Positions 9,410-47,000 of a stretch of 64,000 nt of DNA are shown here, piece after piece (positions within the stretch are counted from its first letter, which is position 1; each line of letters opens with the position of its first letter). A model generated the notes under the pieces. It was not told the origin of the DNA and searched no databases. It was given only the letters and a program-made list of their open reading frames with translations. The stretch is taken from positions 65,286,001 to 65,350,000 of the forward strand of contig OZ296649.1 in assembly GCA_965655095.1 (NCBI GenBank). Direction: 5' to 3'. The DNA is from Haplodiscus bocki. Its lineage: Eukaryota. The translations under genes and the position numbers were made by a program.

Positions 9410-12400
9410 TCACCCTGGCTTTAAACAGGCAGTGGGTTCACCACTACATACAATAAGTTTCAAACCGTCTTCTTTGTGCGGCCAAGTTTTTGCGATGTCT
9501 TCACCTAAATTGATGGCTGTGAAGAGTGATACATTTTTCTTTTTGAGATTAACGTAGTTCGATGCTGCATCCAGCCATTCTTTCTCAAATACGCGGACTC
9601 TATGAGACGCATTGGTTAAATTGAACCCAGTTACATAGGCACAAACTTTCCAGGGCAACCGATTTGTAATTTTTGTGAACTTAGAACCTAACCCAGAATT
9701 GTGTTCCCTCAGACGACGCACCAAGGACATAGTGGAGCCAATGTACAACAGCTGACTTTGTGGGACACTCTGCAGCAAGTAACAGAAACCCAAGTTTTGG
9801 GTAGGTAGGTCACGAGTTGATGGCGGAAAAGGCGATGCTTTGGCATGATAAACTGTGGGATCGCGCGCAGAACTTTTTGTCAGAATTTCATTAGTCAGCT
9901 CAGCCCACTGTGATTTTTTGCGGACTAAGTCTAAAACTGCTCTTCTATTCTCCTCCTTCGTGCCCACAAAAGTGACATGGTTCAAACTCCGTACCCTGCT
10001 CATAACCACATACAACTGCTCAGGAAGCCACAAAGCAAAATCTCGTGACCCCACTATTTGCGTCGCCACCATCGGCAGAGTTTCGCCCATGGTCTTGTGA
10101 ATGGTGGACGCAACAAAAAGCTTTAACGGATACTGTATCCTCCTGCACACTGTTTTATGGTTTAATCGGAAGGCTACACCAGTTTCCTTGCCAATAACAA
10201 CACACCTCCAACTGTTTCTGATCACAGAGAGTGGCGGGATATTTCTGCAACCAGCTGGAGCAAGAGCAACTGTTAGGGTACCATTTTCAATGGTATCCAA
10301 AGTCAGGAGGACGCAAAATTGACCTTGATATGCTGATAAGGATGGTTTGTTGACAGTTAATCGCATAATAGCACCGGGGTATAGAAAAAGTGATTGGGGC
10401 TCAAGGCACTTTTTGTTCAGGAACTTCGACGCTGTTGCAGACGCCTCACTCCAGTTGTCGGTGCTCGAAACGCACATTTCGTCGATGGACGCACTTTCAA
10501 AGTATTGTGCTCTGCTGCATTTAACTTCAGTGATTTTATTCTCGGTTGCTTTCCGTTCCGCTTGTCTAGTAGCAAAAATTCGAATTCTATCGTTCGGCAC
10601 GTCGTTCCACGATTGTACAAAAGTGCAATCTTTCTCCATAATTTTCCAAATTTTTTCTGCATTGGCATCTGTTTTAGGCGTTGCTGATAACAATGATAAC
10701 AGTTCCTGGCCGTTCTTGTTCCGCATTCGGACAAAATTTTTCAAATTGTGGAAAGCAAAGGTTGTTAAAGGAAAAGAGGAACTCATCAAGTAAGATCCAG
10801 AGGGCGGAGGAAGTTGAAAGAAGTCACCAGTTGCGACAACGAGTTTTCCGCCGAAAGGAACATAATTTGCTGTGACAACTTGCAAAACATGATCTGTCGC
10901 TGCCCAAAGCTCGCTAGATATCATCGAAAGTTCTTCAACGAAAATTACGTCTAAGTGCTGTAAAACTCGGCTTTTGATAGGAGATCGTTGTAAATTGGAC
11001 AGAGCCTTCTTCGAAAGTGATTCTGCAGAGCAACATTTTTCAACTGGAAATGGTATCAAAGCATTCAGATGTTTTCCAGCTAAAGCAGCAGATCTTTCAG
11101 CTGCTATGGATGTCACCACACAATGCTATCCTTGACATAAGGCGTAAGCAAGAGATTTCAGCATCACAAAAGTTTTGCCGCTTCCTGGTGGACCGAAAAC
11201 AATCTGATGTCTTATGAAAGTGCAATGTCCTCGTTTATACATGTCTATTGAATTAATGAGTTCGTCCAAAACTTGACGTTGCTCTAAATATGAGTTTTTA
11301 CTTTGATCCGGGCTCTTCTGTAAAAGTGGCTTCCAAGGCACTGGAGTATTGAAAGTGGCGTCGATCATCGTTTGCTCTGCAGGTAATTCAGTCTGACATG
11401 TCTGAAGGAAAGCTATCATTTTACACTTTTCCATAGCCAGTTGAATTGTGACTGTTTCTTCGCATTCCTCCAGGACGCTTTTGTCGAGAACAGGTGGTAA
11501 AGCAGCAGCAAAAAAGAGATTGTTTATCAACAGTGCCTCCGATATGACACTATGGGCCATTACCAAGTAAGTGTCAATCAATTTAGATGACCCTGGAGTG
11601 AAGCGAAGCTGTTCCAGCAAATACTTCTTAGCTATTTCTTTCACTTCGCCATCAGTGACGGTTGAGTTTAGCAAAATACCCGCTTTTATGAAAGCTTCTT
11701 TGAAAGTTTGGACGTTCAAGATGTCCAACTCAGTGTCAAGTTTCCCGACGGTCAGTAACAGATGAAGTAAAAACTTTGTTGGGTTATTCGGTAGACTGTT
11801 GCTGAAAACAACAACGGCCTCTTCTTCTGACAAGTTTTTCCAATGAGCAACGAACTGAGAACTGTTCTTGTTTTCAAGAATGGGAACAATGTGTTTCCTC
11901 ATTTCGCGTTTCAAGATCTGATTCCGTTCTTCACCAAACTTTTCTTGACAGAGACTTACGAAAGAGTTAACAGCAGATGGGCGCAGTTTAACCAAATATC
12001 CAAGTGCATCAACCCAGCAGCTTTTACGTAAACCTTTTTTCAAGAACTTCTCGTGATTGCTAAGGCAGTTTGTTCTTCTGGGTTTCCAGCGCACAAACCA
12101 GCTGTAATAGTCTTTTAACTGCGATACGAACAAAAGTTCCGGCGGCCTCAGTCCAAAAACAGTTACCTTGTCAGGAGAAATGAAACTGTTTTCAACATCT
12201 GCAAGGAGGAGGGTTTGACTTTTTGTAAATTGTCGAAGTTTTGGGAGTTCCAATAATTCTTTTCGCACACGGATTCCATCAGTGAAAGTGGCGCTGAAAT
12301 TCGGAGACTTGTGAAAACGTTTCTCAATTACAATTCCTGAACGATATTCTTTGGGAACTGTAGGCACATGTACAAAGTCAACATTTGTGCAGACGTAAGG

Positions 12401-20638: not shown

Positions 20639-20663
20639 CACCGTCGCCTCCACTGGGTGGTCA
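20639..20663. repeat. Junction motif J2 (B|mini1)
   Basis: CACCGTCGCCTCCACTGGGTGGTCA (1 mismatch). Confidence 0.9.
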
Positions 20664-21712: not shown

Positions 21713-21717
21713 GGTCA
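21693..21717. repeat. Junction motif J3 (mini1|A2)
   Basis: Exact 25-bp motif. Confidence 0.9.
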
Positions 21718-23039
21718 CGCTCTTAAGCCCCACGAAACAGTTTTGCGAGGCGGGGGAGGGGCCCTGTGCCGAGCTTCATAAATCAAGTTTACACCTAACC
21801 GGACCCCCCCGAAAAGGAGACGATCTCGAAACCTAACCATACGATTTCAATCAAACTTTGCATGTGGATAGAGTCTGCCGATGTATGAAGATTTTTGGCA
21901 CTTACATCATTTTCTTTTTTTTTCGTTGGGGAGATATGACGCAATGATCCTGTTTTTTGGCAGGTTTCGATGTATTTTTCGCAATATCTCCACAATTTAA
22001 CCATAGCATTGGACTCAAATTTTTTGTGTCAAGCACAATTGTTGTGGACTACCTACATGCCAAAAGTTTTTGGCCAGGGCCTTTTGCCCTAGGAGATATG
22101 ACCTTTCAAAATTGTCAAAAATAGGCCAAAATCGACCAATTTGTCATTTCTCCCACGTTGATGTTAAAAAAGTGATGTGAGCTTTCGTCACAACGTGACG
22201 GGACCTGTGTCAAATGAAAAAAAATTTTCCGACAAAAAAACAGTTTTGGTCAAATTGCCGAAAATAATGACGGTTATGACGATTTTTTGTGGAGGAAAAA
22301 AAAACAGGTAAAAAGTCAGTTTCTCCTCTACTTCATCTGAAATCCGTCAACTTTTTGAAGGCGGGAATGAAGCTTTGCTGAAATTTCATACTCAACTATT
22401 AGGCTGGGAAACTGTCGGTAACACAAGTTTTAACTAGGGCCAATTCAAGGAAACTCGCTGCAGTTTTTTTCTTTCAATTCCAAATTATTTGTAATAGAAA
22501 TTATGAAGATTATGTTATAGTTATACATAACTGTAGCAACTTTTTTTTTGTCTCAGCGGACATTGAATTACATTTGAGGTGACTAGTTACAAGGAGCTGC
22601 ACAAACTTTTTTCTGAATGACCCATTGAATTTTTAATGAACATTATACGTACCAACAACAGAAAACAACTTAAACTGTGCTAAATAAAGTTCACTAGTAA
22701 TACAAAATGAAATCTCAGTTTAACTGCAAATGAATGGTAGCAACCCTTGAAAATTCAATTGAATGCACGTAGAAAAAATGCACTTCATGACAACTCTCTT
22801 TTTCTTAAACGACAATTGATCTTTTAATTTTGGGCAAACACCTTACGGTCGAATGCCTTGTGACAGTCGATGTTGCATGCAAACAACTTTCGGTAGCTTG
22901 CTGAATGATTCATTGCACCTTGTTTTAATTGTCTCTAATACCTGTGTTGAGCCTGTAATTAATTTGTAACTGTAGTAAAAACTATCACAACAGTGATTGA
23001 TATAAGATTTGTTTGAGTTTTGTTGGTTCAATGAAGTGT

Positions 23040-24053
23040 TCATCTCATGTTGTTTGCATTGTCACTTGCCGGCAAACTTGCGTTAGCGTGAAAAAGGCGT
23101 GGTGGCTGGTTTGTATCGTCTCCAGTCCAGGGAATTACATTGTACTTCAAATTCACAGGGATCTCAGTCGCTGGAGTGATCCGACAAATTCTTACCCTTT
23201 GAACATTTTGGGCAATGTTTTCTTCTGTCAAAGCAGTTTTGTAGAAGCCTGACACTCTCCATCCACCATTGTTATTAACATGGTTAGCAACACGCATGAC
23301 AGCTTCTCTCAAAAGTCCCCTGTCAATTGATGTGTATGCCGATCTAATGATAGCTTCCTCACAAAAAAGTTTGGTCAAAGACAAACTTTGCAGAATATCC
23401 CCTGTTAGAGGATCATCGTCTTCGTTCAATATGTCCTGACTAAGTACCCTTGCTGACATTACCCATGCCGACAAAGTCAATTTTTGCAAACATGCACAAA
23501 TGCTTTCGTTTTTTCTATTTCTTCTGTCGCACAAAAAACCTGAACAAGTCGGAAACACAGGAATTACGTGCAGAAACGAAAGGGGTCGATGTGGGAGACA
23601 GAAGTGGAACATTGCACCCGTCGAGGGATTCAAATCGATAGGAACAGGCTCCATTGGCAGGTCGTCGGTAACTACCTCTAACGGAAGAGACACGTTGAAA
23701 ATTGGATTGGTTCGATCGTTACCAAGGCAGGAGTTGGAAAATATTGCTTCTTTCACGTCAACGATGGCACCAATAGTTAATTTTCGGTCAGCAAAAAGGA
23801 GTGAACTTTTCTGCGCAGAATCGGCTATTACTGCAAAACATTCTCGCGTTTCCATTTCGCCGATGATGATTAGGCGATCATAGTTTGTGTCAGGGGTCAA
23901 TCTTTTAGCTTTTACAGTTTGCCGTCGAAATAACTGTAGGGGACGATCAAATTTTTTAAAAACCAAAACAACACCTCGGATATATGTCTTCTCACTGTTT
24001 CGCAAGAAATTGGGAGCAGTTATTTGGGCCGTATTTACACGGGTGGTCATCAT
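23040..24053 (-). CDS. Accessory protein of element A2 (~337 aa), possible OB-fold/RPA-like
   Basis: Homolog of 7550-8560. Start placed at MMTTRVN by alignment with B and C, although the ORF is open to 24107. Confidence 0.8.
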   Translation of the reverse strand: MMTTRVNTAQITAPNFLRNSEKTYIRGVVLVFKKFDRPLQLFRRQTVKAKRLTPDTNYDRLIIIGEMETRECFAVIADSAQKSSLLFADRKLTIGAIVDVKEAIFSNSCLGNDRTNPIFNVSLPLEVVTDDLPMEPVPIDLNPSTGAMFHFCLPHRPLSFLHVIPVFPTCSGFLCDRRNRKNESICACLQKLTLSAWVMSARVLSQDILNEDDDPLTGDILQSLSLTKLFCEEAIIRSAYTSIDRGLLREAVMRVANHVNNNGGWRVSGFYKTALTEENIAQNVQRVRICRITPATEIPVNLKYNVIPWTGDDTNQPPRLFHANASLPASDNANNMR

Positions 24054-25393
24054 CTGGAACATTCCCTTCAAGCACCATCTTACACAACGCGGTTTACACA
24101 ATGACATTTTTTTAACCTATTCAGGACGCAGAACTAAGTGTTCTCAATAAACAAAACAAAGAAGATGAATTTGAACATGATCAAATACAACTTCATTAAT
24201 TTTCCACGTTTCAGTGAGAATTGTTAGTATACATTAAAAGGTTCGATATTAAAGTTGTTGCTCTTTTTTTACATTGAAAAAATTTACATGATTATTTACA
24301 TGATGCCACGCAAAAGGTGGAACTGACTTTTTTCAAATTTTTTTTCACGTTTCAACGGTCTGAAAGTTCAGTCAATAGAAAATGAGGGGTATGTTTGGTC
24401 TTAATTACATTCTTCAACGAACTTTCATTGAACAATCATGGCTGCAAATGCAAATGAAAAGAGTATACGTATTGAAAACGTGTTAATTCAGGATAAAATT
24501 GAAGTTCTTTGTGGTAACCAGTCTAACATGAAACTAAAATCTTTTGAAAAATGATTAATTCATTGCACAGACAATGATAGCAACTTGAAAGAAATGAAAC
24601 AATCGACAGTTTTTTGACTTAAACAAATGAAGTTGAATCGAAGCTACATAAAACGATATTTCAGGGGAAGTAATCTGCGGAATGTTCCATTTCAATGAGA
24701 ATTTCAATTAGGTACAAAAAATTAACAGAAATAAAAACAACGCCGAACAAAAAGCAACATTCAAGGGTTTAGCAGTATCCATGGGTTTAGCAGTATTCAC
24801 TTTATGGAGAAACGTATGTGAAAGAAACAAGCATACATAAAAAACAACGCAACATACCAAATTCAAAGGTTTACCGGATTAAAATGACATTTACTCAAAA
24901 AGTCATTGAATTTTGTTGAGAAGTTACAAAAAAATAAAAACTCAGATCACTTTACAGTCGATTCCAATTGTATGCACAGTAAAACAACCAATAACTCCTA
25001 TTTGTTTGCTGCATGATAAAATAGGAATATCTGTTTAATCGAATATGCCGAAGGAAGCCTTCAAAACCTTGGTCGTCCAGGTTTCCCACAACACTTTTAT
25101 TTCTTTTTCAGTTGGAAAATGATGTGATTGCTTTCAGAACCCCAGTCGACATTGAGCAGGTGTACGTATTCTGCGACGCTCTGTTAAAAGAGTGGGCATT
25201 AAACAATTACAATTGATCACAATTTTGTCGACCACATTATGAAAACTTTTCAGTCAACTTTGATATTTTAAAAGAAACTAAGAAGAAAGAAAACAAACAC
25301 GCCAATACCAAAAAATCTAACACAGGGTATCATGTTAGAGACTGCGTTCATTAATCAACAACTACTTCACGAAAGCTTTGTTACTTGTACTTA

Positions 25394-27073: not shown

Positions 27074-30000
27074 CTAAAGTAATATGGGCTGATTACAGCA
27101 AATTACCAATTTCAAGACATCTTCTTTATGAGGCCAATTTATGATTAAGTTTTCTGCTGTTGACAATGCATTCGGGAGGGAGATGTTCTTCTTCCTCAAG
27201 TTAAGCACTTTAGTAACTGCCTCAAGCCACCGTTTTTCAAAAAACCTTATTCTCTCCGTTGAGCTGATTGCAAGAAAACCAGTCACGTAAGCACACAAAA
27301 CCCAAGGTCTTCGAGAGGGATCCTGTGTGAATGATGCTCCCAAGCCAACATTATGTTCACGAATTCGTCGATTGAGGCACATTGTTGAACCAATATATAA
27401 TAAGTTGTTTTGCGGGACGCTCTGAATAAGGTAACAGTAGCCAACATTCTCCTGCGGTATACTGATGGTTGATGGAAAAGGGTTTGCAGCACCATGGAAG
27501 ATCGTTGGGTCACGGGAAGAACACTTCTGGAGGATTTCGGAAGTCAGCTCCGACCACTGTGACTTTTTACACAGCAAACTCAGAATGGCTCCTTCGTTCG
27601 ACTGCTTCGATCCCACGAAAGTGATGTCCGCCAGTGATCGAACACGACTCATTACTACGTATAGTTGCTCTGGCAACCAAAGTGAAAACTCTTGGGCTCC
27701 AACAATCTGCGTGGCAACTGTTGGGAGTGTTTCGCCCATAGTTTTATGAATAGTTGACGCCACGTACAATTTGAGGGGGAATTGGATTCTGCGACAAATA
27801 GTTCTGTGGTTCAGACAAATGTTCACTCCAATTTCTTTTGCAAGGACAATACATCTCCAGGTACTTCGAATTACAGAGAGTGGTGGAATGGATCGGCAAC
27901 CAGCAGGTGCCAAGGCAACACTTACTGTTCCGTTGTCAGCCAATGAGTCCAGGGAAACCAAAACACAGAGTTGTCCTTGGAAAGCCATCACATTTGGCTT
28001 GTTAACGGTGAGTCGGAGAATTGCTCCAGGGAACAGAAACAACGATTGTGGCTCCAAACATTTCTTGTTTAAAAACTTTGTCGCCGCTCCAGAAGCTTCT
28101 ATCCAGTTGTCCGTACTTGACACACACATTTCATCTGTCGATGAACTTTCATGGAACTGGGAACCACTGTCTTTCACTTGACAAATTTTCTTTAATGTCG
28201 CATATCTTTCTGCTTTGCGAGTAGCAAAAATTCTAATTGTATCATTTGGTACGTCATCCCAACATTCTACGAAATTGCAATTTCGCTCAATCAAATTCCA
28301 AATTTGCTTTCCGATGGGAGGTGTTCTGGGAAAAGTTGACATGAGTGACAAAACTTTCTGACCTGCTTCGTTTTGCATACGCACAAAGTGCTGGAGGAAA
28401 CTAAAATGAAAAGTCGTTAAAGGGAATGAAGAACTGATCAGACAACTTCCTTTTGGTGGAGGAAGTTGAAAAAAATCTCCTGTTGCAATGATTAGTTTCC
28501 CAGCAAATGGCACGTAGTTCGAGCAAATGATTTGGAAAACGTGGTCCGTGGCAGCCCAAAGTTCACTTGAGATCATCGAAATTTCTTCAACGAACAATAC
28601 ATCCAAATTCTGGAGAAACCGACTTCTGTCCGGTGATTTCTGCAAGCTGGACAAAGCTACTTGAGACAAAGAATTAACAGTTCCATTTTTTTCCACCGGG
28701 AAAGGAATGAGAGCGTTCAGATGCTTCCCACCTAAAGCAGCTGACCTTTCGGCCGCCAGCGAAGTTACCATGCAATTGAGTCCTTGACATATTGCATAAC
28801 TCAGACCTCTCAGCATGATGAACGTTTTTCCCGTTCCTGGTGCCCCTGCAAGGATTTGATGTCTGACGAAATTTTGTGTTCCTCCTCTGTACAAGTCCAC
28901 CATTTCAACTAAATGTTTCAAAATTTCACTCTGTTCACAGTACGACTTCACTGTCTGGCCAGGATGTCTACCAAAGTCCGGTTTCCAAACAACGGGTGCA
29001 GTTAGGGAAGCGTCTATCATACTTTCTTCGCTTGGAAGTCCCATTTGACATGTGTGTAAGAACTCTACCAATCTACTCTTGTTCATTGTCAAATCTACAG
29101 CAACATTTTCTTCGGAGTCGGCAGAGATAGTGCGATCCAAAACAGCTGGTACCCCGGATGCAAAATACAAATTGTTTTCTAACAGTGCCTCTCCTAGAGC
29201 ACTATTTGCCATCAACAAATACTTGTCAATGAGTTTAGAGGATCCTGGCACAAAGCGGAGCTGTTGCAGTAGGTACCGGCGAGCTAGTTGAAGGACGACT
29301 GCTACAGTAATGTTGTTACGCTCGACCAGTTTGGCAGCTGCAAAAGCTTCCCTGAAAGAGGAAACAGAGAGAATGTCCAGTTCGGTGTCAAACGAACCAA
29401 AAGTTAGCACAAAGTGCAACAAGAACTTTGTTGGACTACTGGGCAGATTATTTGTGAAAAACACTATGGCTTTTTGATCTGAGAAACAAAGATTGTACGC
29501 TACTAGTCTGGGGCAACTGTTGGTTCCTTGCAATTTGGGGACAATGTGTTTGCGGCACTCCTCTTTCAAAAATTCGTCCCTCGGCTTATCACTTCTTGTT
29601 GCACAGAAATCAAGAAAATCAAAGATAGCGGGTGGGCGTATCTTGATGACGTATCCGAGGCAATCAACCCAAAAGTCATTACACGATGCACGGCTCAACA
29701 TAATCTCATGACTACTTTTCCCTTTCGAAATGTTGTTTTTGAGTCTAACGAACCAACTGAAATAACTTTTCAAACTGCTGACAAAGAGAAGCTCCGGTGG
29801 TCTCAACCCAAAAATGGTCACTTTGTCAGGCGTAATCGAACTCGCTTCTACATCTGCCAACAACAATTCTTGATTTTTTGTTAATTGTCGATGTTTTGGA
29901 AGCTTCAGGACGTTTTTCCGAATTCGAACAGCTTCGGCAAAAACAGCACTGAAGTTCATGGTGCTCGCAGTATATTTTTCTATCACTATTCCTGATCTGA

Positions 30001-33000
30001 ATTCTTTGGGAACTGTTGGTACATGAATGAAATCTACGTTTGTGCAAACGTACGGCAACTGCAAAGCCCACCACAAGCATTCAGTAATGCTAACAATTCT
30101 TCCTGTTACAGATTTGAGTTTATCATCATCCTGACGTTTTTTGGTTACGCTGGATTGGACGCCGGCTATTTTTTCATTCACAATAGGTTCCGTTTGCACT
30201 TTCACTTCATTCTCACCAGCAGAGGCTAATATCTTTGTGAACGCCCAACCTTCCACACCGGCAGCATACTTTGCAACGTATCGTGAACACATTTCGTCGT
30301 CACAAATTTGGACGTTCGTACTGCTTTCGGTGAAAGCAAACAAAGCTGCATTTGTTGGTGACAAGTGTTCATTGTAAGCAGCAGGGTAGTGATGTTTTCC
30401 AGCTCTCAGTTCTTCTTCAACTTTGTCTGTTGAAGAGTTAGGGTCAATATAGGACAATTTCATGCTTCTCAGCAAGTCCCAAGTTTCTTTGGAGTAATTA
30501 GGTTGTATTTCCTTGTAAGAGAACCCAACTGATGCAGGATATTTAGGTACCCTACACACTGGCTTTCCCGACCAATCAGTTTTCTTTTTACATCTATTTT
30601 TTCCCTTGCCACAATCGTGCCGTTGGTATTTTTGGAAAAGTTCTCCCAACCGGAACCGTTCTCTATCCGATAATGCTGGACAACATTTGCTCATGGCGCC
30701 CATGAATGTTTCTTTCGAACAGCAGACTCGGGATTGAACTTCCGGACCAAACTTGTTTTCTCCGGTACACACTAGTGCATGGATGTGTGGAAAGGCCGAA
30801 GTTTCATCTTGCCACTCGTATCTCATCCATAAGTGAGAGATTGGTCCCAAAGGTTGCTCGGCCGAACACTTCAACCATTGCATTACATACAGTGAGGCGC
30901 GATGCCAACATCTAAACATAGGCATTAATTCACTTTGTATTACAGATAATCTCAGTTCTTTCGATGTAATATCGGGCGGGTAAAGTTTGTCAATAGCCTG
31001 GAAAATTTTCCGCAAGCCGGGGTGAGTAGATTGCCCACATGTGTATGTAACAAAATAAGTGGGGTTTTTATCTCTAATGAGTGCTGCTACTTCGCAGACA
31101 TTTTTCCGGGATTCTGCACAATCGAACTTGAACGTTTCATCGGAAAAGTACTGATAATTAGTAGTCGCACTGCCCAATTCTTGCCAGCCTCTGTTCAACA
31201 CAATCCGAATATCAGTTTTACTCAATTGTAAGTTTAAAAGACAGTCAAAAACGAACTGAAGATATGATGCGTGACTGGAGGTTAAAAGCGACCCATCAGT
31301 GATGCGAGTTCGCAGCATGTTCTCTAAACCTGCAAACCCTACTTGTTTGTTGTATTTTTCGGATTGGAACAGGGATATTGGAATTGCTCCTTCAATGCTG
31401 CCATCGTAATTTTGGGACCAGAAAATAGAAGGAAAAAGCAGTCCTTCCGGTTGAAGCAAAGGCGTTGATGATGTCGAGGAAGCTGTAATGTTTTCCATGA
31501 AACGTTTCTCCTTAACGGTTAGGGTAATGGGATGACTTTTTTTCCTGTACAGTAAGTTGCATCGAGAATTCAACAGTATGTGGAGAGGAATATTATAATT
31601 TTCCTCACTGACAGCCTCTTGTACAGCAACAATGGCCCTTTCACCCGAACACATGTTCAATTTATTCATCACCAATTCACTTTCGCTGATCGAGTTTGCG
31701 TTCATGTTGTTGCACAAAAAAGAAGCTAACGACGAACTTGAGTTTTGACTTGAACAGTTGATGGATAAATCTGGTTCAACAACGCTTCTGTCCTGCTCAC
31801 ATAAACTAGCTATGTTGGAATTCAGTTCACACAGTGCACCATTGATTGCAGCTTCAGCGTTTGGGTTTTCAGGCGCTATTTTTCGTTTTGCTATAGGTCC
31901 AACTAAAACTCGTAAGTTCGGATGTTTCATTCCCTCGTCGAAGTGTTTCTTACACACACAACTGTTGCACTTTGAGTAGGCACATCTGAGGAATGATGAC
32001 CTTCCACATCGACAGAAGTAGTTGCTACGTCGGAAGTCCCTTGTTAAAGGAACATCATGTTTGTCACAAATGAAAACTCCTTGACCGGTTAAATTACTGA
32101 GATAGTGCCATTTTACAGTCGACACTTTCTTAGAGTTAGTTCCTCGGTAGATTATAAAACTCCAGTAGCCTCGTAGAATTTTTTCTATTAAGGTCTCAGG
32201 TGACTCCAACAAAGGTTTAGCAAACTTGTTAGCTTTCAGTGTACGCCAAAAATTGCAGAAGCGACCACCATGCCGAAGCAAAATTACAGCATCTGTACCC
32301 CGAGAACCACAACCACATCCCACAAGTTCAAATTGGACATCAAACACGATGATATTGAGAGGTGAGTTGACCTTGTTCCTCAAATTGTTTACATCAGTTG
32401 TTGTAGCAATCACGTGTTTCGTATCCATGGTTACGTCGCGCACAATTTTCTCAGTCAATTCTATTCTTTGGCTCAAATGCAGATGGCATAAGTCAGCACA
32501 TAATGCGTGCAACACCACGCCACCCGCCTGAAAAAAGTTTGAAATCATGTTTGGGTTGTCATTGTTAGTCGCCGCGTTGTTCAATATACTGTCAATGTCA
32601 GCTTGAGCTTGTGAAATACGCTGCAACTTGCTTTCTTTTCCAAACCCAGCAACTGTATGACGCAACAGTGACAACAAATTTGTTGCCAAAACGTGGTTAA
32701 CGCCGGATACCATGGATGAACATAAAATTGGAGAAATGCAGCATGCTGCTTGAAGAAACCAGAGTGTATCTCCAGTATCATTGATCAGAGGAGGAGGTGA
32801 GCAACCATGTTCATTGTTTGGTTGAGCCAAAGCGTAGCACTGAAGAAATTTCACATTACTCAAAAGTTCTTGTTCGTTTTTGTCCATTACTTTCGTCAAT
32901 CGAATGCAGGTGTCAAGATCTACGCCGACATACTGCGGCATTTTTTCCTTTTTCGGCCGATATTGAGAGAGATCAGTGGCGACATCTTCAATCAATTTAC

Positions 33001-35170
33001 CTTGAACAACCCATTGTCTAATTAAAATTGGGATATCTGACCTGAAAAACATGGCGGTTCCTTCAGCCTGGAACAAACGATTGCTAGTGATGTTCCAACG
33101 CCGTTTACGTCTCAACGAAACAGTACTCATACCACTATAAGACCCAACGCTCCGAAACAGTTGATAGGTGTGGCTAGCATAATTAGCCTTCAAGCTACTC
33201 ACACACGACAATGAAGGTGATACAATGGCTAATCGTTCCTCAAACAAAGTTGGAATTCGTCCCAGCTCCGGATGCCTGGGGGGATGCAAGAACTGTAACG
33301 CACATCCCCTGTCATGCGCAGAACAAGTTTGCACAACCAAACCTTCTTTCTCATGTAACCGCAATGTGGCAGCCACTAGAAACGTCTTTAAGCACATCAA
33401 AGGGCGCAAAAAGTCGAGTCTAGCGCCTCTGAGTTTTTTGAATGCAGACGCTTGGAATGACGTGAAAGTTCTGTCTATTAAGTTTACAAAATGCTGCGCT
33501 GGTATGTAGCCAGGATCTTCGATAAACGTCCAACAACCAAAAGGGCAACGTATGTTTGGATACGGTTCCAAGTCCAAAGCTTCAGCCATTTCTTTTTGTC
33601 TCATTGTTGTCATTAGTTGCTCGAAACGTTTCAGTCTCTGTGTTCCATCAACAGTACAAGTGCCAAAAATACGACGCCGATTCAAAACACGCTGGATGCA
33701 GATAGGGAAAAGGGTAATTACCCCTAGCCAATGTTGCCTTATTTCCAGGGGTAACAGCGAGCAAATAGCGACTAAACAAGCTTCTGGCTTGGAAGTATCA
33801 GAAAGGAGCGTGAAAAAAACAGCTGGCCAAGCCATTTGCCAGTTAATTTTTGGTGCAGTACAATAGTCATAACAGAAACAACACAGATGTACGTTATCGT
33901 TTTTCAGCTTCCTGCCGAACTTTCTATTAACCAATCCAGCTTTGCTGTAGGCCTTAATGTCGAACGGAAAATATACCGTGGCTTGACGCATGCACTTGCA
34001 ACAAATGTTGGCAGCATCGACAGTATCTGTCACAACCAATTTTGACTCAGTTTTAACGGTTGATTCTTCAGTCAATTCCGATGATGGAACAAAATTTTCA
34101 GTTATTTTCAGTAAAATCTCATCAGTCAACTCGCCTCCAGGCAATCTGTGAAACTGATCTTGTCGATGTTCCACAGCAGTTGGAGGACGGCCTCTACTTC
34201 GCGTTGTAGTATTTTCTCCATCACAAAGAGCTTCTGCCAAACAAAAAGATGTCACAGCTGTATTAGTTTCTCTATCGTCGATCAAATATGTGGCGACTGG
34301 ATATTCTGAAGACCGTCTGCGCTTCTGCAACGGCTCAGTTTCATCAAGTGCTGCAAGCGCTGTCTGGATTACGTGGCAGTGAGTATTCATTGCTGAATTT
34401 GCACATTGACTACTCGAACCAGCAACATCTTCTGATAGGAGTGATGAAGTGTGGTATGTTTCGGTCAAGCCACTAATTACCTCAAAGTGATCTCCAGTTC
34501 GCGTTTGTTGAATGAAAACGCCTTGTCTGTCATTTGAGCAGTCGCATTTGTAAACGAACCAATTTTTCAAAAGACTGTGGTATACATAAACGTCCAATTT
34601 AAAAATTTGACAGAAGGTATATATTTCAGCACAAGTGCCAAAAACTCCATTTTCTGCCATTTGCGATGTCTGCAGGTAGTGGTTGACAGTTGGACTGGTG
34701 AGAAGTTTGTTCTGGTTGGGGAACTCAGCGGAATAGATAGAAGTTTGCAAACTGTTTTCCGGAAAGGTTACCGAGTCCATGTTACTCACAATATGTTTCC
34801 TCAAATCATGACCACTTTCATGAGAGAAACCGATAGCTACGCCCAGGGCAGTGAAAAGACAATTACCATCACCCGTTATTTTAAGACTCTGCGAGGGTTG
34901 AACAGAAGTGAGGCGAAAGTTAGTTTTATTCACAATTATGCCGCTTGTTGGGGAACAGGATAGTCCCATCGCTTTCAACGTTGACTCTATGTGCAGGGTA
35001 TCAACAGACAAGACCAGCAAATTACTATGAGCTATACTGTACAAAATTCCTAATGGTTCGCTGGTTGAAGAAACATTGTCAGTGGTATTTGGACAGGAGT
35101 GATTACGTTCACTGAAGCGTCCACATTTTGCACAGCGACGTCTTTTCAAATCACTGTTGCCAGATGGCAT
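27074..35170 (-). CDS. Helitron-like RepHel polyprotein (~2698 aa): CCHC finger - OTU - Cys-rich region - HUH/Y2 Rep - Pif1 SF1 helicase - SLX1-like GIY-YIG nuclease
   Basis: Single intronless ORF, ATG at 35170. Motifs CAKC-x7-HSC, GDGNCLF..HFE, PTYFVTYTC, RYEWQ..FPHIH, YVAKY, GAPGTGKT, FVEEISM, GDFFQLPP, QFPL..TIHKTMG, LYVVMSRV, GYCY..YIGST..RRIREHN. Confidence 0.95.
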   Translation of the reverse strand: MPSGNSDLKRRRCAKCGRFSERNHSCPNTTDNVSSTSEPLGILYSIAHSNLLVLSVDTLHIESTLKAMGLSCSPTSGIIVNKTNFRLTSVQPSQSLKITGDGNCLFTALGVAIGFSHESGHDLRKHIVSNMDSVTFPENSLQTSIYSAEFPNQNKLLTSPTVNHYLQTSQMAENGVFGTCAEIYTFCQIFKLDVYVYHSLLKNWFVYKCDCSNDRQGVFIQQTRTGDHFEVISGLTETYHTSSLLSEDVAGSSSQCANSAMNTHCHVIQTALAALDETEPLQKRRRSSEYPVATYLIDDRETNTAVTSFCLAEALCDGENTTTRSRGRPPTAVEHRQDQFHRLPGGELTDEILLKITENFVPSSELTEESTVKTESKLVVTDTVDAANICCKCMRQATVYFPFDIKAYSKAGLVNRKFGRKLKNDNVHLCCFCYDYCTAPKINWQMAWPAVFFTLLSDTSKPEACLVAICSLLPLEIRQHWLGVITLFPICIQRVLNRRRIFGTCTVDGTQRLKRFEQLMTTMRQKEMAEALDLEPYPNIRCPFGCWTFIEDPGYIPAQHFVNLIDRTFTSFQASAFKKLRGARLDFLRPLMCLKTFLVAATLRLHEKEGLVVQTCSAHDRGCALQFLHPPRHPELGRIPTLFEERLAIVSPSLSCVSSLKANYASHTYQLFRSVGSYSGMSTVSLRRKRRWNITSNRLFQAEGTAMFFRSDIPILIRQWVVQGKLIEDVATDLSQYRPKKEKMPQYVGVDLDTCIRLTKVMDKNEQELLSNVKFLQCYALAQPNNEHGCSPPPLINDTGDTLWFLQAACCISPILCSSMVSGVNHVLATNLLSLLRHTVAGFGKESKLQRISQAQADIDSILNNAATNNDNPNMISNFFQAGGVVLHALCADLCHLHLSQRIELTEKIVRDVTMDTKHVIATTTDVNNLRNKVNSPLNIIVFDVQFELVGCGCGSRGTDAVILLRHGGRFCNFWRTLKANKFAKPLLESPETLIEKILRGYWSFIIYRGTNSKKVSTVKWHYLSNLTGQGVFICDKHDVPLTRDFRRSNYFCRCGRSSFLRCAYSKCNSCVCKKHFDEGMKHPNLRVLVGPIAKRKIAPENPNAEAAINGALCELNSNIASLCEQDRSVVEPDLSINCSSQNSSSSLASFLCNNMNANSISESELVMNKLNMCSGERAIVAVQEAVSEENYNIPLHILLNSRCNLLYRKKSHPITLTVKEKRFMENITASSTSSTPLLQPEGLLFPSIFWSQNYDGSIEGAIPISLFQSEKYNKQVGFAGLENMLRTRITDGSLLTSSHASYLQFVFDCLLNLQLSKTDIRIVLNRGWQELGSATTNYQYFSDETFKFDCAESRKNVCEVAALIRDKNPTYFVTYTCGQSTHPGLRKIFQAIDKLYPPDITSKELRLSVIQSELMPMFRCWHRASLYVMQWLKCSAEQPLGPISHLWMRYEWQDETSAFPHIHALVCTGENKFGPEVQSRVCCSKETFMGAMSKCCPALSDRERFRLGELFQKYQRHDCGKGKNRCKKKTDWSGKPVCRVPKYPASVGFSYKEIQPNYSKETWDLLRSMKLSYIDPNSSTDKVEEELRAGKHHYPAAYNEHLSPTNAALFAFTESSTNVQICDDEMCSRYVAKYAAGVEGWAFTKILASAGENEVKVQTEPIVNEKIAGVQSSVTKKRQDDDKLKSVTGRIVSITECLWWALQLPYVCTNVDFIHVPTVPKEFRSGIVIEKYTASTMNFSAVFAEAVRIRKNVLKLPKHRQLTKNQELLLADVEASSITPDKVTIFGLRPPELLFVSSLKSYFSWFVRLKNNISKGKSSHEIMLSRASCNDFWVDCLGYVIKIRPPAIFDFLDFCATRSDKPRDEFLKEECRKHIVPKLQGTNSCPRLVAYNLCFSDQKAIVFFTNNLPSSPTKFLLHFVLTFGSFDTELDILSVSSFREAFAAAKLVERNNITVAVVLQLARRYLLQQLRFVPGSSKLIDKYLLMANSALGEALLENNLYFASGVPAVLDRTISADSEENVAVDLTMNKSRLVEFLHTCQMGLPSEESMIDASLTAPVVWKPDFGRHPGQTVKSYCEQSEILKHLVEMVDLYRGGTQNFVRHQILAGAPGTGKTFIMLRGLSYAICQGLNCMVTSLAAERSAALGGKHLNALIPFPVEKNGTVNSLSQVALSSLQKSPDRSRFLQNLDVLFVEEISMISSELWAATDHVFQIICSNYVPFAGKLIIATGDFFQLPPPKGSCLISSSFPLTTFHFSFLQHFVRMQNEAGQKVLSLMSTFPRTPPIGKQIWNLIERNCNFVECWDDVPNDTIRIFATRKAERYATLKKICQVKDSGSQFHESSSTDEMCVSSTDNWIEASGAATKFLNKKCLEPQSLFLFPGAILRLTVNKPNVMAFQGQLCVLVSLDSLADNGTVSVALAPAGCRSIPPLSVIRSTWRCIVLAKEIGVNICLNHRTICRRIQFPLKLYVASTIHKTMGETLPTVATQIVGAQEFSLWLPEQLYVVMSRVRSLADITFVGSKQSNEGAILSLLCKKSQWSELTSEILQKCSSRDPTIFHGAANPFPSTISIPQENVGYCYLIQSVPQNNLLYIGSTMCLNRRIREHNVGLGASFTQDPSRRPWVLCAYVTGFLAISSTERIRFFEKRWLEAVTKVLNLRKKNISLPNALSTAENLIINWPHKEDVLKLVICCNQPILL
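27200..27445 (-). other. SLX1-like GIY-YIG endonuclease domain
   Basis: GYCYLIQS-x7-LYIGSTMCLNRRIREHNVGLGASFT-x5-RPWVLCAYVTGF-x10-FFEKRW. The Tyr/Tyr/Arg/His/Glu active-site set and SLX1-type HNxG..T..RPW..GF..FE..W signature are present. Confidence 0.85.
27600..28870 (-). other. Pif1-family SF1B helicase domain
   Basis: Walker A at 28823-28846, motif III GDFFQLPP, motif V TIHKTMGETL, motif VI LYVVMSRVR at ~27640-27665. Confidence 0.9.
30250..31100 (-). other. HUH Rep (Y2) catalytic domain
   Basis: Motif 1 PTYFVTYTC (~31037-31063), motif 2 RYEWQDETSAFPHIH (~30779-30826), motif 3 YVAKY (30266-30280). Confidence 0.88.
34470..34890 (-). other. OTU-like cysteine protease domain
   Basis: ITGDGNCLFTAL ... 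GVFGTCAEIYTFCQIF ... GDHFEVI, giving catalytic Asp/Cys/His. Confidence 0.88.
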
Positions 35171-38100
35171 TGTTCTTTCACAACAAACTTCGCTCAAAAG
35201 TTTATCAATAACTCATCTTTAATAGTGAATACAATGTAAAGAGTAGGCGCCATTATAGAACCAACGTACAAAATGACATCGTTTTGCTCGGCTTTCAAAC
35301 TGTTCAATTAACGGTAGCATCTAATTAATTCGAAAAAAGTAGTATCCAGAAAAATACATGCAATGTGGGCCTTGGTTTTGCGCAGTTAACGGAGCAAAAC
35401 CAAGGCATTCATCAGAGAATGAAAACAAACAGGTACTTACTTGGAGAGGCGGCGATGTAATGAGTGTTAATTGCGAATCTTGTGTTGTTTAAAAATCGTA
35501 TTTAAGAAAATAATTTCCGTTCGCCCATACAAGTGGAACGCATCTCGATGTTACGGATTCCCGTAAATTAGTAGTGTACATGGCGAGTTCTGTCAAGTTT
35601 TTTTCCACAATCCTCAGTAAAAGAGACTACAATGCACATCACAATGGTTCTTAGAAACCAACAATGTTCAGTTGGAAAAACCAACTGAGAACGCATAAGT
35701 GTTGAGCGAATTCATACGGATTTCGAAAGGTGTTTGGGAAAACTGTGCACTTTAGCAGGGCTGCAAGTTAACCTACAAAGAGTTATCATGAAAAATGAGG
35801 AGGCAAGAAATGGAGAAAAAAAAGTTTTCCGAGATCTTACTATTAATTCAGGCAAACTAAAATTATGCCCTATTCTTTATGACTGAAGTCTGACACGAGG
35901 TGAAAATTGACTCCACAGAAAAATATCATCACGTAGAAAACCCGAAATCCTAACAAATTAGAGAACTATGTTTAAAAGATTCTCACCATCTTGTTTTTCT
36001 CTTAGTAAAATCTTGGCTTCCAAAATCATTGCATGATACGGAAGTTATGGAAGCTGAGAAAACCAGGTGATTCAGTTGAGAAAACAACTGCTTGGAGCAG
36101 TGGTTGATCAATAAAAATTCAATCAAAAATATCGACAGCGTTTATGTAAATGCTAAAAATGAAACATTCAAGTTGATTATTGTACAAAGCAGATGGAATT
36201 TTTGACAGTTGAAACAAGAAACAGCAAGAGGCCCTCTTTTTCCCCCGCGAAAAAACACGTTAACAATTTTACCTTGTCAAAGTTTCATTTGAACACCTGA
36301 AGAATGTAAACTTTCAGTATTTGCCGAAATTTATTGAAATTGTCGTCAAACAGAAGTCGTTTTCTTATAAGTGCGTCACAAAGTTGATCCACAGTCCCAT
36401 GCGTGGTACTTCCACGCCACAGATAACACACAGTTTGCTATGAATGTTGAGGCAGTACTTTCCACCAAAAAGTATTTTCCACAAGCAAGGCTTTTTGCTA
36501 ACATCTGCACAAAACGCGTCCGAATCCAAACAGTGTTGTCGGAAAAGGCAATTTTTTGCGGTCAAAACTATTGATAAAATGATCTGAATTACGGTCATTC
36601 GATCTTGAATTTCGCTCCAAAAATGGTAAAAACGATTGAGTGGTTGATCACATGGAAGATGAAACGAAACTCACAGGCAACACAAACATGAAGATTTTTC
36701 AATAGCAGCAAAAACACGATGAAATGACGCACACACTGTCAAGTTTGTCAGAAACCTATAGGTAATGTAATTCTGCGAACATGCACGTTAACACTCCGTA
36801 GCTTTTAGGCGGTAGAAGGGTAAAAAATTAATGAAAACATTTTCTCCGTAGCAAAACCATTAGCTTGCTCAACTCTGAGGAGCCCGTTGACACTGTTCGT
36901 TCAATGCCAATCATCTTTGGAATCCATCGGTATAAATTTAAAGTTACGATTATGTTGTACACTTTTCAATTTTTCTTACGCCTCTCATGCTCCATCAGCC
37001 TCATTAGCAATTCATGTAGGATGATAACAGCGGAGTTCCCCTTTGGAATTCGGAAATTGTGGAAGAATACCCAGTACTCAGTCAACGATTCTTACAAATA
37101 TTATCCAGCTTTCTTCGTTCAGGAAAACGTCAGTTAAATAAATTACCCGAAACAATTAGCTCAATTTATCGACAGAAGCCACACGATGTTGACCATAGTC
37201 AGTTGAGACTTCAGTGAGCCACGATTCACAAGAGGAAAACTTCAAACGATCGAATGACATAAGAAAAGTGTCTACTTCAGAGGGTCCAAATGAGGGATGG
37301 GAAATTGGCAAAGTCTAGTTGACGCTAAAGAAATTATGATTTCATATCAAAAAGCTTTATACAAAAACTAACTTCGGCAATAGTTGAGAGGAATAACACT
37401 TTGCTATATTTCGCACGTCCGCAGATAATTTTTTTGACAATGAGAAGCATTATTTCACAGAAACAGAAAAATCAAAACTTACTTTGAAAAAAGTTCGAAA
37501 CTCCCATATGTAGGCTTCAGAACCAACCAAATATATTCTTGCGAAAAACTCAGGTAAAAGAATTCGTGAAACGCGACAATTTTTGAACGGTCTGTAGAAC
37601 AATAAAATCTTCAAAATCGGAAACACCCAAAAACGACATCAAGAGTAAATAAGCATCGTTTCAACTGTACACATTACCTCCACATATTATTGAAGTTGCT
37701 TACACTAACCACATTTCATGTTGGCAAAAGATCAAAAAGTAGATAATCGAAGTACTGCTTTCAAGAGTTCATAAATGAAAGGCACATATTTAATCGACTA
37801 TCAGTACTGATCCACCATGAAGTTGGCCTTTATCTTGTCATAATTTATGGTTGAAGATTATTTGATGAAGCCAACTGTCTGAATTCAATGATGATTATGA
37901 CTATTAACTTTTCTCATCTTTTTGTTTTCCAAAAGCATCCAACGTTCTATATATGTATTTGGACGACGCATGAATAATATTGTTACATAGTGGATGAAAT
38001 GTCATGGCGCAGAACTTCCTATTCATAAATTTTCTAGTACAGAACACCTAACTGTACATTTTCATGTTTTGAAAAAATCAACTGATGTGAAATAGCACAC

Positions 38101-38659
38101 AACACTTATATTGTTCCTCTGAAGCACAAAGGAAGGCAACGAGAACCACGAAGAATTGCTTCAAGTACATGACTCATTGCGCAACCAATAGATTTTTTTA
38201 AAAAAAGTGGATTAACTAAATGGAACGGAACTGTCCTGAAAACGTCCATTGTTATGGAAGCCGGTAACGGGTAGGTCTCCGGAGATATATTTCAATTCAG
38301 CAGCTGATAAAGTGGAAAATTTGTTACTTTACCGTTCTGAGCTGACTTCCGGAAAAAATCGACCGGAAAGTACGTTTGCCATACTTCATTGCTGGTGTAT
38401 GAACTTAAAAAAAACCAGGAAGATTACTATAGGTTTTGAGGAACATCCTCACATTTACGGTGTGAGACGACCTCTGTACGTATCAGTTGCATCCGCATTG
38501 TGCGAGTTAATCTTCAGTCTGGAGAAAAGTATCGTAAAAAAAAAGAACAAACAACAGTTTCCAATTATATAAACAAAAATTTAGATTCCGAACCAATCAC
38601 CAGAATTGATACAGAAATAGAAAATTGAAGGCAAAAAAATCCCGCCCTCTAGTAATTTG

Positions 38660-44038: not shown

Positions 44039-47000
44039 CTAAGGTAATATGGGCTGATTACAGCAAATTACCAATTTCAAGACATCTTCTTTATGAGGCC
44101 AATTTATGATTAAGTTTTCTGCTGTTGGCAATGCATTCGGGAGGGAGATGTTCTTCTTCCTCAAGTTAAGCACTTTAGTAACTGCCTCAAGCCACCGTTT
44201 TTCAAAAAACCTTATTCTCTCCGTTGAGCTGCTTGCAAGAAAGCCGGTCACATAAGCACACAAAACCCAAGGTCTTCGAGAGGGATCCTGTGTGAATGAT
44301 GCTCCCAAGCCAACATTATGTTCACGAATTCGTCGATTGAGGCACATTGTTGAACCAATATATAACAAGTTGTTTTGGGGGACGCTCTGAATAAGGTAAC
44401 AGTAGCCAACATTCTCCTGCGGTATACTGATGGTTGATGGAAAAGGGTTTGTAGCACCATGGAAGATCGTTGGGTCACGGGAAGAACACTTCTGGAGGAT
44501 TTCATTACTCAGCTCCGACCACTGTGACTTTTTACTCAGCAAACTCAGGATGGCTCCTTCGTTGGACTGCTTCGATCCCACGAAAGTGATGTCCACCAGT
44601 GATCGAACACGACTCATTACTACGTATAGTTGCTCTGGCAACCAAAGCGAAAACTCTTGAGCTCCAACAATCTGCGTAGCAACTGTTGGGAGTGTTTCGC
44701 CCATAGTTTTATGAATAAATGACGCCACGTACAATTTGAGGGGGAATTGGATTCTGCGACAAATAGTTCTGTGGTTCAGACAAATGTTCACTCCAATTTC
44801 TTTTGCAAGGACAATACATCTCCAGGTACTTCGAATTACAGAGAGTGGTGGAATGGATCGGCAACCAGCAGGTGCCAAGGCAACACTTACTGTTCCGTTG
44901 TCAGCCAATGAGTCCAGGGAAACCAAAACACAGAGTTGTCCTTGGAAAGCCATCACATTTGGCTTGTTAACGGTGAGTCGGAGAATTGCTCCGGGGAACA
45001 GAAACAACGATTGTGGCTCCAAACATTTCTTGTTTAGAAACTTTGTTACCGCTCCAGAAGCTTCTATCCAGTTGTCCGTACTTGACACGCACATTTCATC
45101 TGTCGATGAACTTTCATGGAACTGGGAACCACTGTCTTTCACTTGATTAATTTTTTTCAACGTCGCATATCTTTCTGCTTTGCGAGTAGCAAAAATTCGA
45201 ATTGCATCATTTGGTACGTCATCCCAACATTCTACGAAATTGCAATTTCGCTCGATCAAATTCCAAATTTGCTTTCCCATGGCAGTTGTTCTGGGAAAAG
45301 TTGACATGAGTGACAAAACTTTCTGACATGTTTCATTTTGCATACGCACAAAGTGTTGGAGGAAACTAAAATGAAAAGTTGTTAAAGGGAATGAAGAACT
45401 GATCAGACAACTTCCTTTTGGTGGAGGAAGTTGAAAAAAATCTACTGTGGCAAGGATTAGTATCCCAGCAAATGGCACGTAGTTCGAGCAAATGATTTGG
45501 AAAACGTGGTCCGTGGCAGCCCAAAGTTCACTTGAGATCATCGAAATTTCTTCAACGAACAATACATCCAAATTCTGGAGTAAGCGACTTTTGTCCGGTG
45601 ATTTCTGCAAGCTGGACAAAGTTACTCGAGACAAAGAATTAACAGTTCCATTTTTTTCCACAGGGAAAGGAATGAGAGCGTTCAGATGCTTGCCAGCTAA
45701 AGCAGCCGACCTTTCGGCCGCCAGCGAAGTTACCATGCAATTGAGTCCTTGACATATTGCATAACTCAGAGCTCTCAACATGATGAACGTTTTTCCCGTT
45801 CCTGGTGGCACTGCAATGATTTGATGTCTGACGAAATTTTGTGTTCCTCCTCTGTACAAGTCCACGATTTCAACTAAATGTTTCAAAATCTTAGTCTGTT
45901 CACAGTACGACTTCACTGTCTGGCTAGGATGTCTACCAAAGTCGGGTTTCCAAGCAACGGGTGCAGTTACAGAAGCATCTGTCATACTTTCTTCGCTTGG
46001 AAGTCCCATTTGACATGTGTGTAAGAACTCCACCAATCTATTCTTGTTCATTGTCAAATCTACAGCAACATTTTCTTCGGAGTCGGCAGAAATAGTGCGA
46101 TCTAAGACAGCTGGTACCCCGGATGCAAAATACAAATTGTTTTCTAACAGTGCCTCTCCTAGAACGCTGTTTGCCATCAACAAAAACTTGTCTATGAGTT
46201 TAGAGGATCCTGGCACAAAGCGGAGCTGTTGCAAAAGGTACCGGCGAGCTAGTAGACGGACGACTGATACAGTAATGTTGTTACGCTCCACCAGTTTGGC
46301 AGCTACAAAAGATTCCCCGAGAGATGAAACAGAGAGAATGTCCAGTTCGGTGTCAAACGAACCAAATGTTAGCACAAAGTGCAACAAGAACTTTGTTGGA
46401 CTACTGGGCAGAGTATTTGTGAAAACCACTATGGCTTTTTGATCTGAGAAACAAAAATTGTACGCCACTAGTCTGGGGCAACTGTTGGCTCCTTGCAATT
46501 TGGGGACAATGTGTTTGCGGCACTCTTCTTTCAAAAATTCGTCCCTCGGGTTATCACTTCTTGTTGCACAAAAATCAAGAAAATCAAAGATAGCGGGTGG
46601 GCGTATCTTGATTACGTATCCAAGGCAATCAACCCAAAAATCATTACACGATGCACGGCTCAACAAAATCTCATGACTACTTTTCCCTTTCGAAATGTTG
46701 TATTTGAATCTAACGAACCAACTGAAATAACTTTTCAAACTGCTGACAAACAGAAGCTCCGGTGGTCTCAGGCCAAAAATGGTCACTTTGTCAGGCGTAA
46801 TTGAACTCGCTTCCACATCTGCCAACAACAATTCTTGATTTTTTGTTAATTGTCGATGTTTTGGAAGCTTCAGAAAGTTTTTCCGAAATCGAACAGCTTC
46901 GGCAAAAACAGCACTGAAATTCATGGTGCTCGCAATTTTTTTTTCAATCACTATTCCTGATCTGAACTCTTTGGGAACTGTTGGTACATGAATGAAATCT

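Follow-up and report, generated by a model that had tools for sequence, protein, structure and literature searches.

Among Helitron-like elements (HLEs), the closest described counterparts of the transposase discussed here are found in the Helentrons (HLE2 subgroup b), in which a Rep domain and a helicase joined in one protein (RepHel) are often preceded by an N-terminal OTU domain and are followed by a fused second nuclease, an apurinic/apyrimidinic (AP) endonuclease of the Exo_endo_phos type (PMC11417382, PMC6431247). A transposase of similar layout lies in a stretch of 64,000 nucleotides from Haplodiscus bocki (GenBank assembly GCA_965655095.1, contig OZ296649.1, positions 65,286,001 to 65,350,000), which as a whole is called the window below. 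In this transposase, however, the slot of the Helentron AP endonuclease is taken by a GIY-YIG nuclease. We hold it as nearly certain that the end of this protein is a RING-less nuclease domain of the SLX1 lineage, that it belongs to the transposase of an autonomous Helitron-like element of about 17 kb, and that it is fixed and selected in the position occupied in Helentrons by the AP endonuclease. A first-pass annotation of the window, made from the sequence alone, had named the AP endonuclease as the classic Helentron nuclease at this position, in agreement with the two papers cited above.

The study that presented HELIANO (PMC11417382) describes a GIY-YIG domain as "captured and transposed" in HelenSM92, a single HLE2 family from the moss Sphagnum magellanicum, and the domain is absent from the recurrent domains analysed there across 404 genomes. 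HelenSM92, which we liken to the present elements from its published description only, is likewise reported to have GIY-YIG besides RepHel and is classified as HLE2; in contrast to the clade described below, it was presented as a capture in one moss family, with no lineage assignment, test of conservation or selection, or clade-wide view. This paper and its preprint were the only sources in which a literature search found Helitrons or Helentrons linked to GIY-YIG. Other results for Helitron and GIY-YIG concerned Penelope elements, Terminons, Fanzor-carrying Mariner elements and unrelated genes, and a search for Helitron with SLX1 found nothing relevant. The first-pass annotation was justified in cautioning that the pairing might already be catalogued, although a passing mention is not a characterised group. 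What is new here is a clade-wide and selected fusion, well past that single published mention.

On the nuclease side, the nearest solved relative is SLX1 (with SLX4). Both have Tyr, Tyr, Arg, His-Asn and Glu in the active site and a long helix after the core, whereas SLX1 has a RING/SLX1_C domain and the Helitron domain, about 25-30% identical to it, is fused to a transposase and has no SLX4-binding or autoinhibitory surface. The plant enzyme At-HIGLE is a RING-less, SLX4-independent member of the SLX1 lineage and is in that respect like the Helitron domain, but it is a separate protein of the host and has a C-terminal regulatory tail of its own, while the Helitron domain is itself the tail of a 2700-aa transposase. 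Stand-alone GIY-YIG proteins of giant viruses (Pithovirus, Klosneuvirus and others) are likewise RING-less and of similar size, yet they are free viral proteins. A parallel from outside the rolling-circle elements is found in Penelope-like retroelements, where a C-terminal GIY-YIG domain is the DNA-nicking module of the reverse transcriptase; in retroelements, too, AP-type and GIY-YIG-type nucleases occur as alternative modules. Penelope-like elements differ in using target-primed reverse transcription and in having, according to the literature, a GIY-YIG domain of a different branch.

Domain order and nuclease lineage

The element copies were located by tblastn of the copy A2 protein against the 64-kb window (G+C 39.6%), which contains four copies, each on the minus strand (Table 1). 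The copy A2 frame has its first ATG at codon 10 and ends with a stop codon at 27074-27076. A two-tyrosine HUH Rep lies upstream of the helicase within the one protein, and the helicase matches PF05970 (PIF1) at 44.9 bits against a cut-off of 25.9, with PIF1 helicases as its best PDB matches. The GIY-YIG domain comes after the PIF1 helicase in the same frame with no stop between. The fusion after the helicase that the first-pass annotation claimed at 27074-27445 is thus real: one open frame of 2707 codons has GIY-YIG as its last domain. The Pfam core of this domain covers residues 2586-2660, and two helices and a terminal strand follow it. Family PF01541 (GIY-YIG) scores 35.2 bits when the full copy A2 protein is scanned and 41.0 bits (E 2.3e-10) when only its last 148 residues are, and it scores 28.6-38.6 bits in four relatives (P0015, P0019, P0025 and P0183). 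With 41.0 bits against a curated cut-off of 22.6, the domain is recognised as a GIY-YIG nuclease, as had been proposed. An NCBIfam scan gave no useful match.

The active site of the domain is well preserved. The string GYCYL...YIGST...RRIREHN.G.G..FT...PW...AYVTGF...FEK.W that the first-pass annotation had read at the RepHel C-terminus is present in all three copies that reach it (A2, B and C), and its motif residues are identical among them. Its further claim, that the putative catalytic residues stay intact across divergent subfamilies, holds for these copies and extends to an alignment of 44 domains that share 23-54% identity with the window copy. In this alignment, Y30, Y42, H56 and E95 show no variation, and conservation of R52, N57 and W98 is 90% or higher; in the corresponding profile, RR.R.HN of the Helitron domain aligns with R35-R36...H40-N41 of Cg-Slx1. 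Two other motifs are clade-wide as well, one proline-rich and directly before the first strand, the other forming the terminal strand.

Assignment to the SLX1 branch, also made in the first-pass annotation, was examined by single-sequence, profile and structure comparisons, which agree with it. A single-sequence search of PDB sequences returned SLX1 of Candida glabrata, Saccharomyces cerevisiae and Thielavia and the Arabidopsis SLX1 homologue as its five best matches (E 3e-8 to 1e-4), with bacterial UPF0213 next. The 44-domain profile widened this spacing, with the five SLX1 sequences at E 7e-17 to 2e-13, UPF0213 at 2e-7 and 2e-5, T4 endonuclease II at 0.09 and UvrC at 0.7. An AlphaFold2 model of the domain, built on the 44-domain alignment, reached a predicted local distance difference test (pLDDT) value of 88.9 and a predicted template-modelling score (pTM) of 0.83. 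Every significant structural match to this model is a GIY-YIG enzyme, which supports the GIY-YIG fold of a three-stranded sheet with flanking helices. All 11 significant Foldseek matches in the PDB are SLX1 or At-HIGLE (E about 1e-6), with UvrC, I-TevI and Hpy188I at E > 0.2. In a shape search of the ESM Atlas, the best named neighbour was a fungal "Slx4p interacting protein" cluster (GIY-YIG plus SLX1_C) with a template-modelling (TM) score of 0.70, followed by a Nucleocytoviricota cluster at 0.65 and bacterial families at 0.55 or less. A Foldseek search of a viral library matched the stand-alone giant-virus proteins at E 2e-7 to 5e-5, about equal to cellular SLX1. On these sequence and model comparisons, the nuclease core belongs to the SLX1 lineage of GIY-YIG enzymes and is nearer to SLX1 than to the other GIY-YIG families. 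No Pfam match to RING or SLX1_C (PF21202), the zinc finger through which SLX1 binds the CCD of SLX4, was found in the protein, and the open reading frame (ORF) ends about 45 residues past the core without a Cys/His cluster. Because the RING/SLX1_C domain is absent, the Helitron domain is SLX1-like in its nuclease core only and is not an SLX1 orthologue.

Table 1. Coordinates of the element copies, domains, motifs and accessory units in the window
Feature	Position in window	Strand	Basis or remark
ORF of autonomous element copy A2, OTU-Rep-PIF1 helicase-GIY-YIG	27074..35197	-	2707 codons, no internal stop
C-terminal SLX1-like GIY-YIG domain, residues 2586-2707 (G2586 to L2707, ~122 aa)	27077..27442	-	Pfam, profile, structure
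Tyr2589, Tyr of 'GIY' (CYL)	27431..27433	-	invariant in 44 aligned domains
Tyr2601, Tyr of 'YIG'	27395..27397	-	invariant in 44 aligned domains
Arg2611...His2615-Asn2616 (RRIREHN)	27350..27367	-	align with Cg-Slx1 R36, H40, N41
Glu2654 (FEKRW)	27236..27238	-	invariant; aligns with metal-binding Glu79 of Cg-Slx1 (FEHAW)
Proline-rich motif PFRPxDxxLPxD	27443-27520		clade-wide; directly before first strand
Terminal strand LRxVxCG	27077-27110		clade-wide; at C-terminal end; LKLVICC in window copy
Linker, helicase to nuclease	27443..27640	-	kept among copies, partly clade-wide (PFRPxDxxLPxD); low model confidence
PIF1-like helicase core, residues 2088-2247	28457..28936	-	Pfam match
Helicase Walker A GTGKT, residue 2121	28823-28837	-	sequence motif
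Rep tyrosine motif YVAKY (ordinary YxxKY form), residues 1640-1644	30266..30280	-	sequence motif
Rep region, partial Helitron_like_N match, residues 1373-1476	30770..31081	-	Pfam
HUH motif HIH, residues 1471-1473	30779-30787	-	sequence motif, ordinary form
OTU-like cysteine protease domain, N-terminal, residues 109-208	34574..34873	-	Pfam
Element copy at window edge	3-2447	-	N-terminal part only, cut by edge; 99% identical to A2
Copy B	9434-17483	-	40-60% identity to A2; frame broken
Copy A2	27077-35197	-	intact
Copy C	44045-52165	-	92% identity to A2; two breaks
GIY-YIG domain of copy B, divergent subfamily	9413..9790	-	56% identical to A2 over last 188 aa; all motif residues kept
GIY-YIG domain of copy C	44042..44407	-	96% identical to A2 over last 188 aa; parent ORF broken twice upstream
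Four element junctions	38540-38780, 21573-21813, 20519-20759, 5790-6030	-	common terminal block of about 100 nt
Short unit of about 1054 bp	20615-22210		between copies A2 and B
Second ORF (355 and 336 aa)	23040-24107, 7550-8560	-	downstream of RepHel in large units

Conservation of the fusion and its place among Helitron-like elements

The fusion is common in the genome of H. bocki itself. A six-frame search of this genome (1.5 Gb) with the last 188 residues of copy A2 gave at least 151 GIY-YIG matches at 34-100% identity, from about ten subfamilies and on many chromosomes. The open frames at these matches range from under 200 aa to 2780 aa, many of them at 2400-2780 aa, so that intact and decayed copies coexist. 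When 15 intact ORFs (2377-2780 aa) were chosen to span the identity range, all 15 ended in a GIY-YIG domain (E 1e-36 to 1e-46 with the 44-domain profile), and three more subfamilies reached via the Rep domain likewise carry it. For pairs limited to unsaturated synonymous divergence (dS 0.15-0.29), the ratio of nonsynonymous to synonymous substitution rates (dN/dS) was 0.05-0.21 in the GIY-YIG domain versus 0.18-0.28 in the rest of the protein. Therefore, constraint on the domain is no weaker than on Rep and the helicase.

Relatives in other genomes have the same architecture. An exhaustive hidden Markov model (HMM) search covering 1.84 billion representative proteins gave 908 matches, of which 248 reach E <= 1e-10; among the best 150 of the 908, nearly all match linker and nuclease together, as the C-terminal ends of clade proteins do. 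From this search came 24 proteins of 1800 aa or longer, including six extra members of two clusters. Every public match of at least 900 aa has the helicase followed by GIY-YIG, and from about 1800 aa upwards all of them have Rep as well. Word-index homology searches with the C-terminal region as part of the full-length protein and with the 188-aa tail by itself gave no match, but this index is too coarse for the result to be informative. Approached from the Rep-helicase side, 27 relatives were found at down to 28% identity, of which 24 end in GIY-YIG and the remaining three are truncated inside the helicase. The tunicate Styela clava has a RefSeq protein (LOC120345964, 2843 aa) that combines OTU, PIF1 and GIY-YIG, and the ESM Atlas clusters with PIF1 and GIY-YIG are mostly from diatoms. 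A 35.8-kb JGI metagenome contig carries a single-copy relative of 2655 aa with RepHel and GIY-YIG between a Nipped-B/cohesin-loader-like gene and an FtsZ-type gene, neighbours that suggest a protist host. This contig is intron-poor and eukaryotic, and the JGI label for the protein reads only "predicted GIY-YIG superfamily endonuclease".

Judged from these sequences, the lineage with the fixed domain occurs in H. bocki and a tunicate as well as in diatoms and numerous uncultured eukaryotes. In a set of 29 full-length proteins, distances between the GIY-YIG domains correlate with those of Rep and of the helicase (Spearman 0.68-0.71, Mantel p = 0.001), a result that fits one old fusion followed by co-divergence of the three domains. 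The first-pass annotation had claimed a distinct Helitron-like lineage, and every complete member examined, in the H. bocki genome and in public data, does bear the GIY-YIG domain.

Where this lineage belongs among HLEs was approached through two kinds of evidence, Rep-core profile E-values and Pfam markers. HLE1 termini read TC...CTRR with an A|T target, and HLE2 has short terminal inverted repeats with a T|T target. In copy A2, Helitron_like_N scores 22.8-24.6 bits, below its cut-off of 28.9, and only the last ~85 positions of the model are matched; other copies in the genome that also match in part and have ORFs of similar size reach up to 42.7 bits. DUF6570, the HLE2 marker, had no match down to E 5 in residues 700-1700, in a single-sequence scan that may miss a very divergent DUF6570, whereas it scores 37-89 bits in the typical HLE2 copies that this genome contains. 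Exo_endo_phos (AP endonuclease) had no match down to E 0.1 in copy A2, where GIY-YIG holds that position. The HLE1 transposase with a solved structure, Helraiser, was matched weakly (E 2.7e-5), in the helicase only and below cellular PIF1. A Rep-core profile of the clade matched HLE2-type copies of the H. bocki genome collinearly at about 1e-8 and HLE1-type copies in fragments at 1e-4 to 1e-6. Because the Rep profile favours HLE2-type copies and an OTU domain is present, the comparison suggests that the GIY-YIG clade is a divergent ally of HLE2. The genome also contains HLE1-type copies (L032 and L033) with a full Helitron_like_N at about 195 bits and PIF1 at 195 bits, and HLE2-type copies (L041 and L042) in which DUF6570 and OTU, or UCH and DUF6570, stand before a full Helitron_like_N. 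The GIY-YIG clade, with PIF1 at 45 bits and Helitron_like_N at 22-43 bits, is unlike either type. At least three Helitron-like lineages therefore coexist in it.

A bolder view, which we regard as possible but doubtful, is that the GIY-YIG elements form a separate, ancient major branch of rolling-circle elements beside HLE1 and classic HLE2, in which a helicase-tethered, SLX4-independent nuclease of SLX1 type is an obligatory second activity that cuts the non-transferred strand at branched intermediates. If that were true, AP-type and GIY-YIG-type nucleases would be interchangeable modules gained independently, as in retrotransposons, and the same nuclease activity might underlie the end-to-end mixed arrays described below.

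Element arrays and the role of the nuclease

Elements of about 15-17 kb are arranged head to tail. In the window the repeat distance is about 16.95 kb and subfamilies with no more than 40-60% identity are interleaved, and at C9:1749418-1783768 of the same genome three intact copies, identical to one another, are spaced at exactly 16,895 bp. Of the at least 151 genomic matches, most fall in a few dense clusters (for example C3:133.75-134.31 Mb), some of which hold both orientations. Copies of different subfamilies abut directly in the window, 3' end to 5' end. The terminal block at the junctions reads GCTCGGCA.AGGGGCCCCTCCCCCGCCTCG ... TGACCACCCAGTGGAGGCAACGGTG ... GGCGG and is kept even between subfamilies whose proteins are 40-60% identical; at three of the four junctions the next large element, with its 5' start (GATTTTTTTGCCTTCAATTTT...), adjoins it without a gap. 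The conserved 3' block ends approximately in ...CTAGAGGGCGG, and GATTTTTTTGCC... comes after it. The short unit between copies A2 and B has the same 3'-terminal block as the large elements and is probably a non-autonomous derivative; repeat families in the window show a spacing of 1054-1056 bp. The second ORF downstream of RepHel in the large units had no Pfam match, even at E 5.

What the nuclease does in transposition can be approached by analogy with Helentrons. Enzymes of the SLX1 lineage nick duplex arms next to branch points (PMC4407285), and RING-less At-HIGLE cuts branched DNA without SLX4 (PMC9071465). In the mechanism that we tentatively favour, while granting it slightly less than even confidence, the tethered nuclease would act as a structure-guided nickase of the non-transferred strand and so as the counterpart of the Helentron AP endonuclease. 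Rep would cut and transfer one strand only and the helicase would unwind that strand; because one strand alone is joined in this way, branched junctions of single- and double-stranded DNA would be left at target and donor, at both insertion and excision. The SLX1-like domain would then nick the non-transferred strand beside the branch, and this nick would supply a 3'-OH for second-strand synthesis, so that repair synthesis could copy the inserted strand and the insertion would be fixed. The Helentron AP endonuclease has been proposed to do just this; here DNA structure rather than sequence would be the guide. Since the domain sits where Helentrons carry their AP endonuclease, an accessory nickase would be the most economical reading. 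Identity and mechanism taken together seem to us somewhat better than an even call.

Several points weigh against this nickase mechanism and the selected fusion behind it. The transposition step at which the domain would act is a matter of pure inference. Canonical Helitrons (Helraiser) transpose without a second nuclease, so the GIY-YIG domain may be accessory rather than essential. Its distance correlation with Rep and the helicase is only moderate beside that between Rep and helicase (0.91), and partly reflects shared ancestry. A search of sequencing runs containing the stretch found no RNA run; the runs come from one organism and from coral and coral-reef metagenomes, and the host is probably a reef animal. 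Fungal SLX1 is inactive without SLX4, and its RING domain both binds SLX4 and autoinhibits the enzyme (PMC4407285); because the Helitron domain has no RING, it would have to be regulated differently, and the activity of the isolated domain is putative.

Other roles have been considered for the domain, among them the two put forward in the first-pass annotation, a resolvase for strand-transfer or flap intermediates and a target nickase linked to end-targeted insertion. The head-to-tail arrays, with their exact spacing of 16,895 bp three times over on C9 and of about 16.95 kb in the window, could point to a donor-side or concatemer resolvase that cuts flaps, forks and Holliday-like junctions and releases unit-length products instead of priming the second strand. 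Its substrates would be the peeled-off transposon strand, or head-to-tail multimers arising when rolling-circle replication reads through the terminator, and Holliday junctions, 5' flaps and splayed arms are the substrates that SLX1-lineage enzymes prefer (PMC4407285, PMC9071465). We nevertheless consider this role unlikely, if worth keeping in view, since the arrays in the window mix subfamilies that are 40-60% identical, which excludes read-through replication of a single element as their source, and since long arrays would hardly be expected if multimers were resolved efficiently. A further idea is an end-targeting, homing-like nuclease, with cuts made in or near the ends of resident copies, whereby new copies would insert alongside and build mixed arrays. 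That subfamilies abut 3' end to 5' end with an approximately 100-nt terminal block in common, and that genomic GIY-YIG matches lie nearly all in a few dense clusters, is what such targeting would be expected to leave. However, it is normally Rep that determines the target of a Helitron, the SLX1 lineage selects for DNA structure and not for sequence, no extra DNA-binding module comes after the nuclease in copy A2, and relatives on metagenomic contigs adjoin ordinary host genes rather than arrays; we judge end-targeting improbable.

A passenger origin would deny the domain any role in transposition and take it for a host or viral GIY-YIG fragment captured by a Helitron, in the sense of HELIANO's phrase quoted above. 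Helitrons often capture gene fragments, and the moss GIY-YIG has been described in just this way (PMC11417382). For the present clade we strongly disfavour it and leave it only the slightest chance. The domain is in frame and at a constant position in every complete clade member down to 28% identity, its putative catalytic residues are invariant, its dN/dS of 0.05-0.21 is as low as or below that of the rest of the transposase, and it has co-diverged with Rep and the helicase.

A second nuclease type in the Helentron slot

We know of no study in which the function of the second Helentron nuclease was ever tested. The elements described here bear on this question in that an unrelated type of nuclease occupies the same slot, is fixed there and is under purifying selection across a deep lineage that spans animals and protists; for this reason the slot appears to serve a function rather than to be left over from gene capture. 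Current annotation of Helitrons can give too low a score to this clade, in which Helitron_like_N is matched only in part and DUF6570 goes undetected. The clade also offers a small, RING-less and presumably partner-independent nuclease of SLX1 type tethered to a 5'-3' helicase, which may interest those who work on structure-selective nucleases. For rolling-circle elements as a whole, AP-type and SLX1-type modules in the same position provide a natural comparison for asking how the insertion of a single strand is completed.

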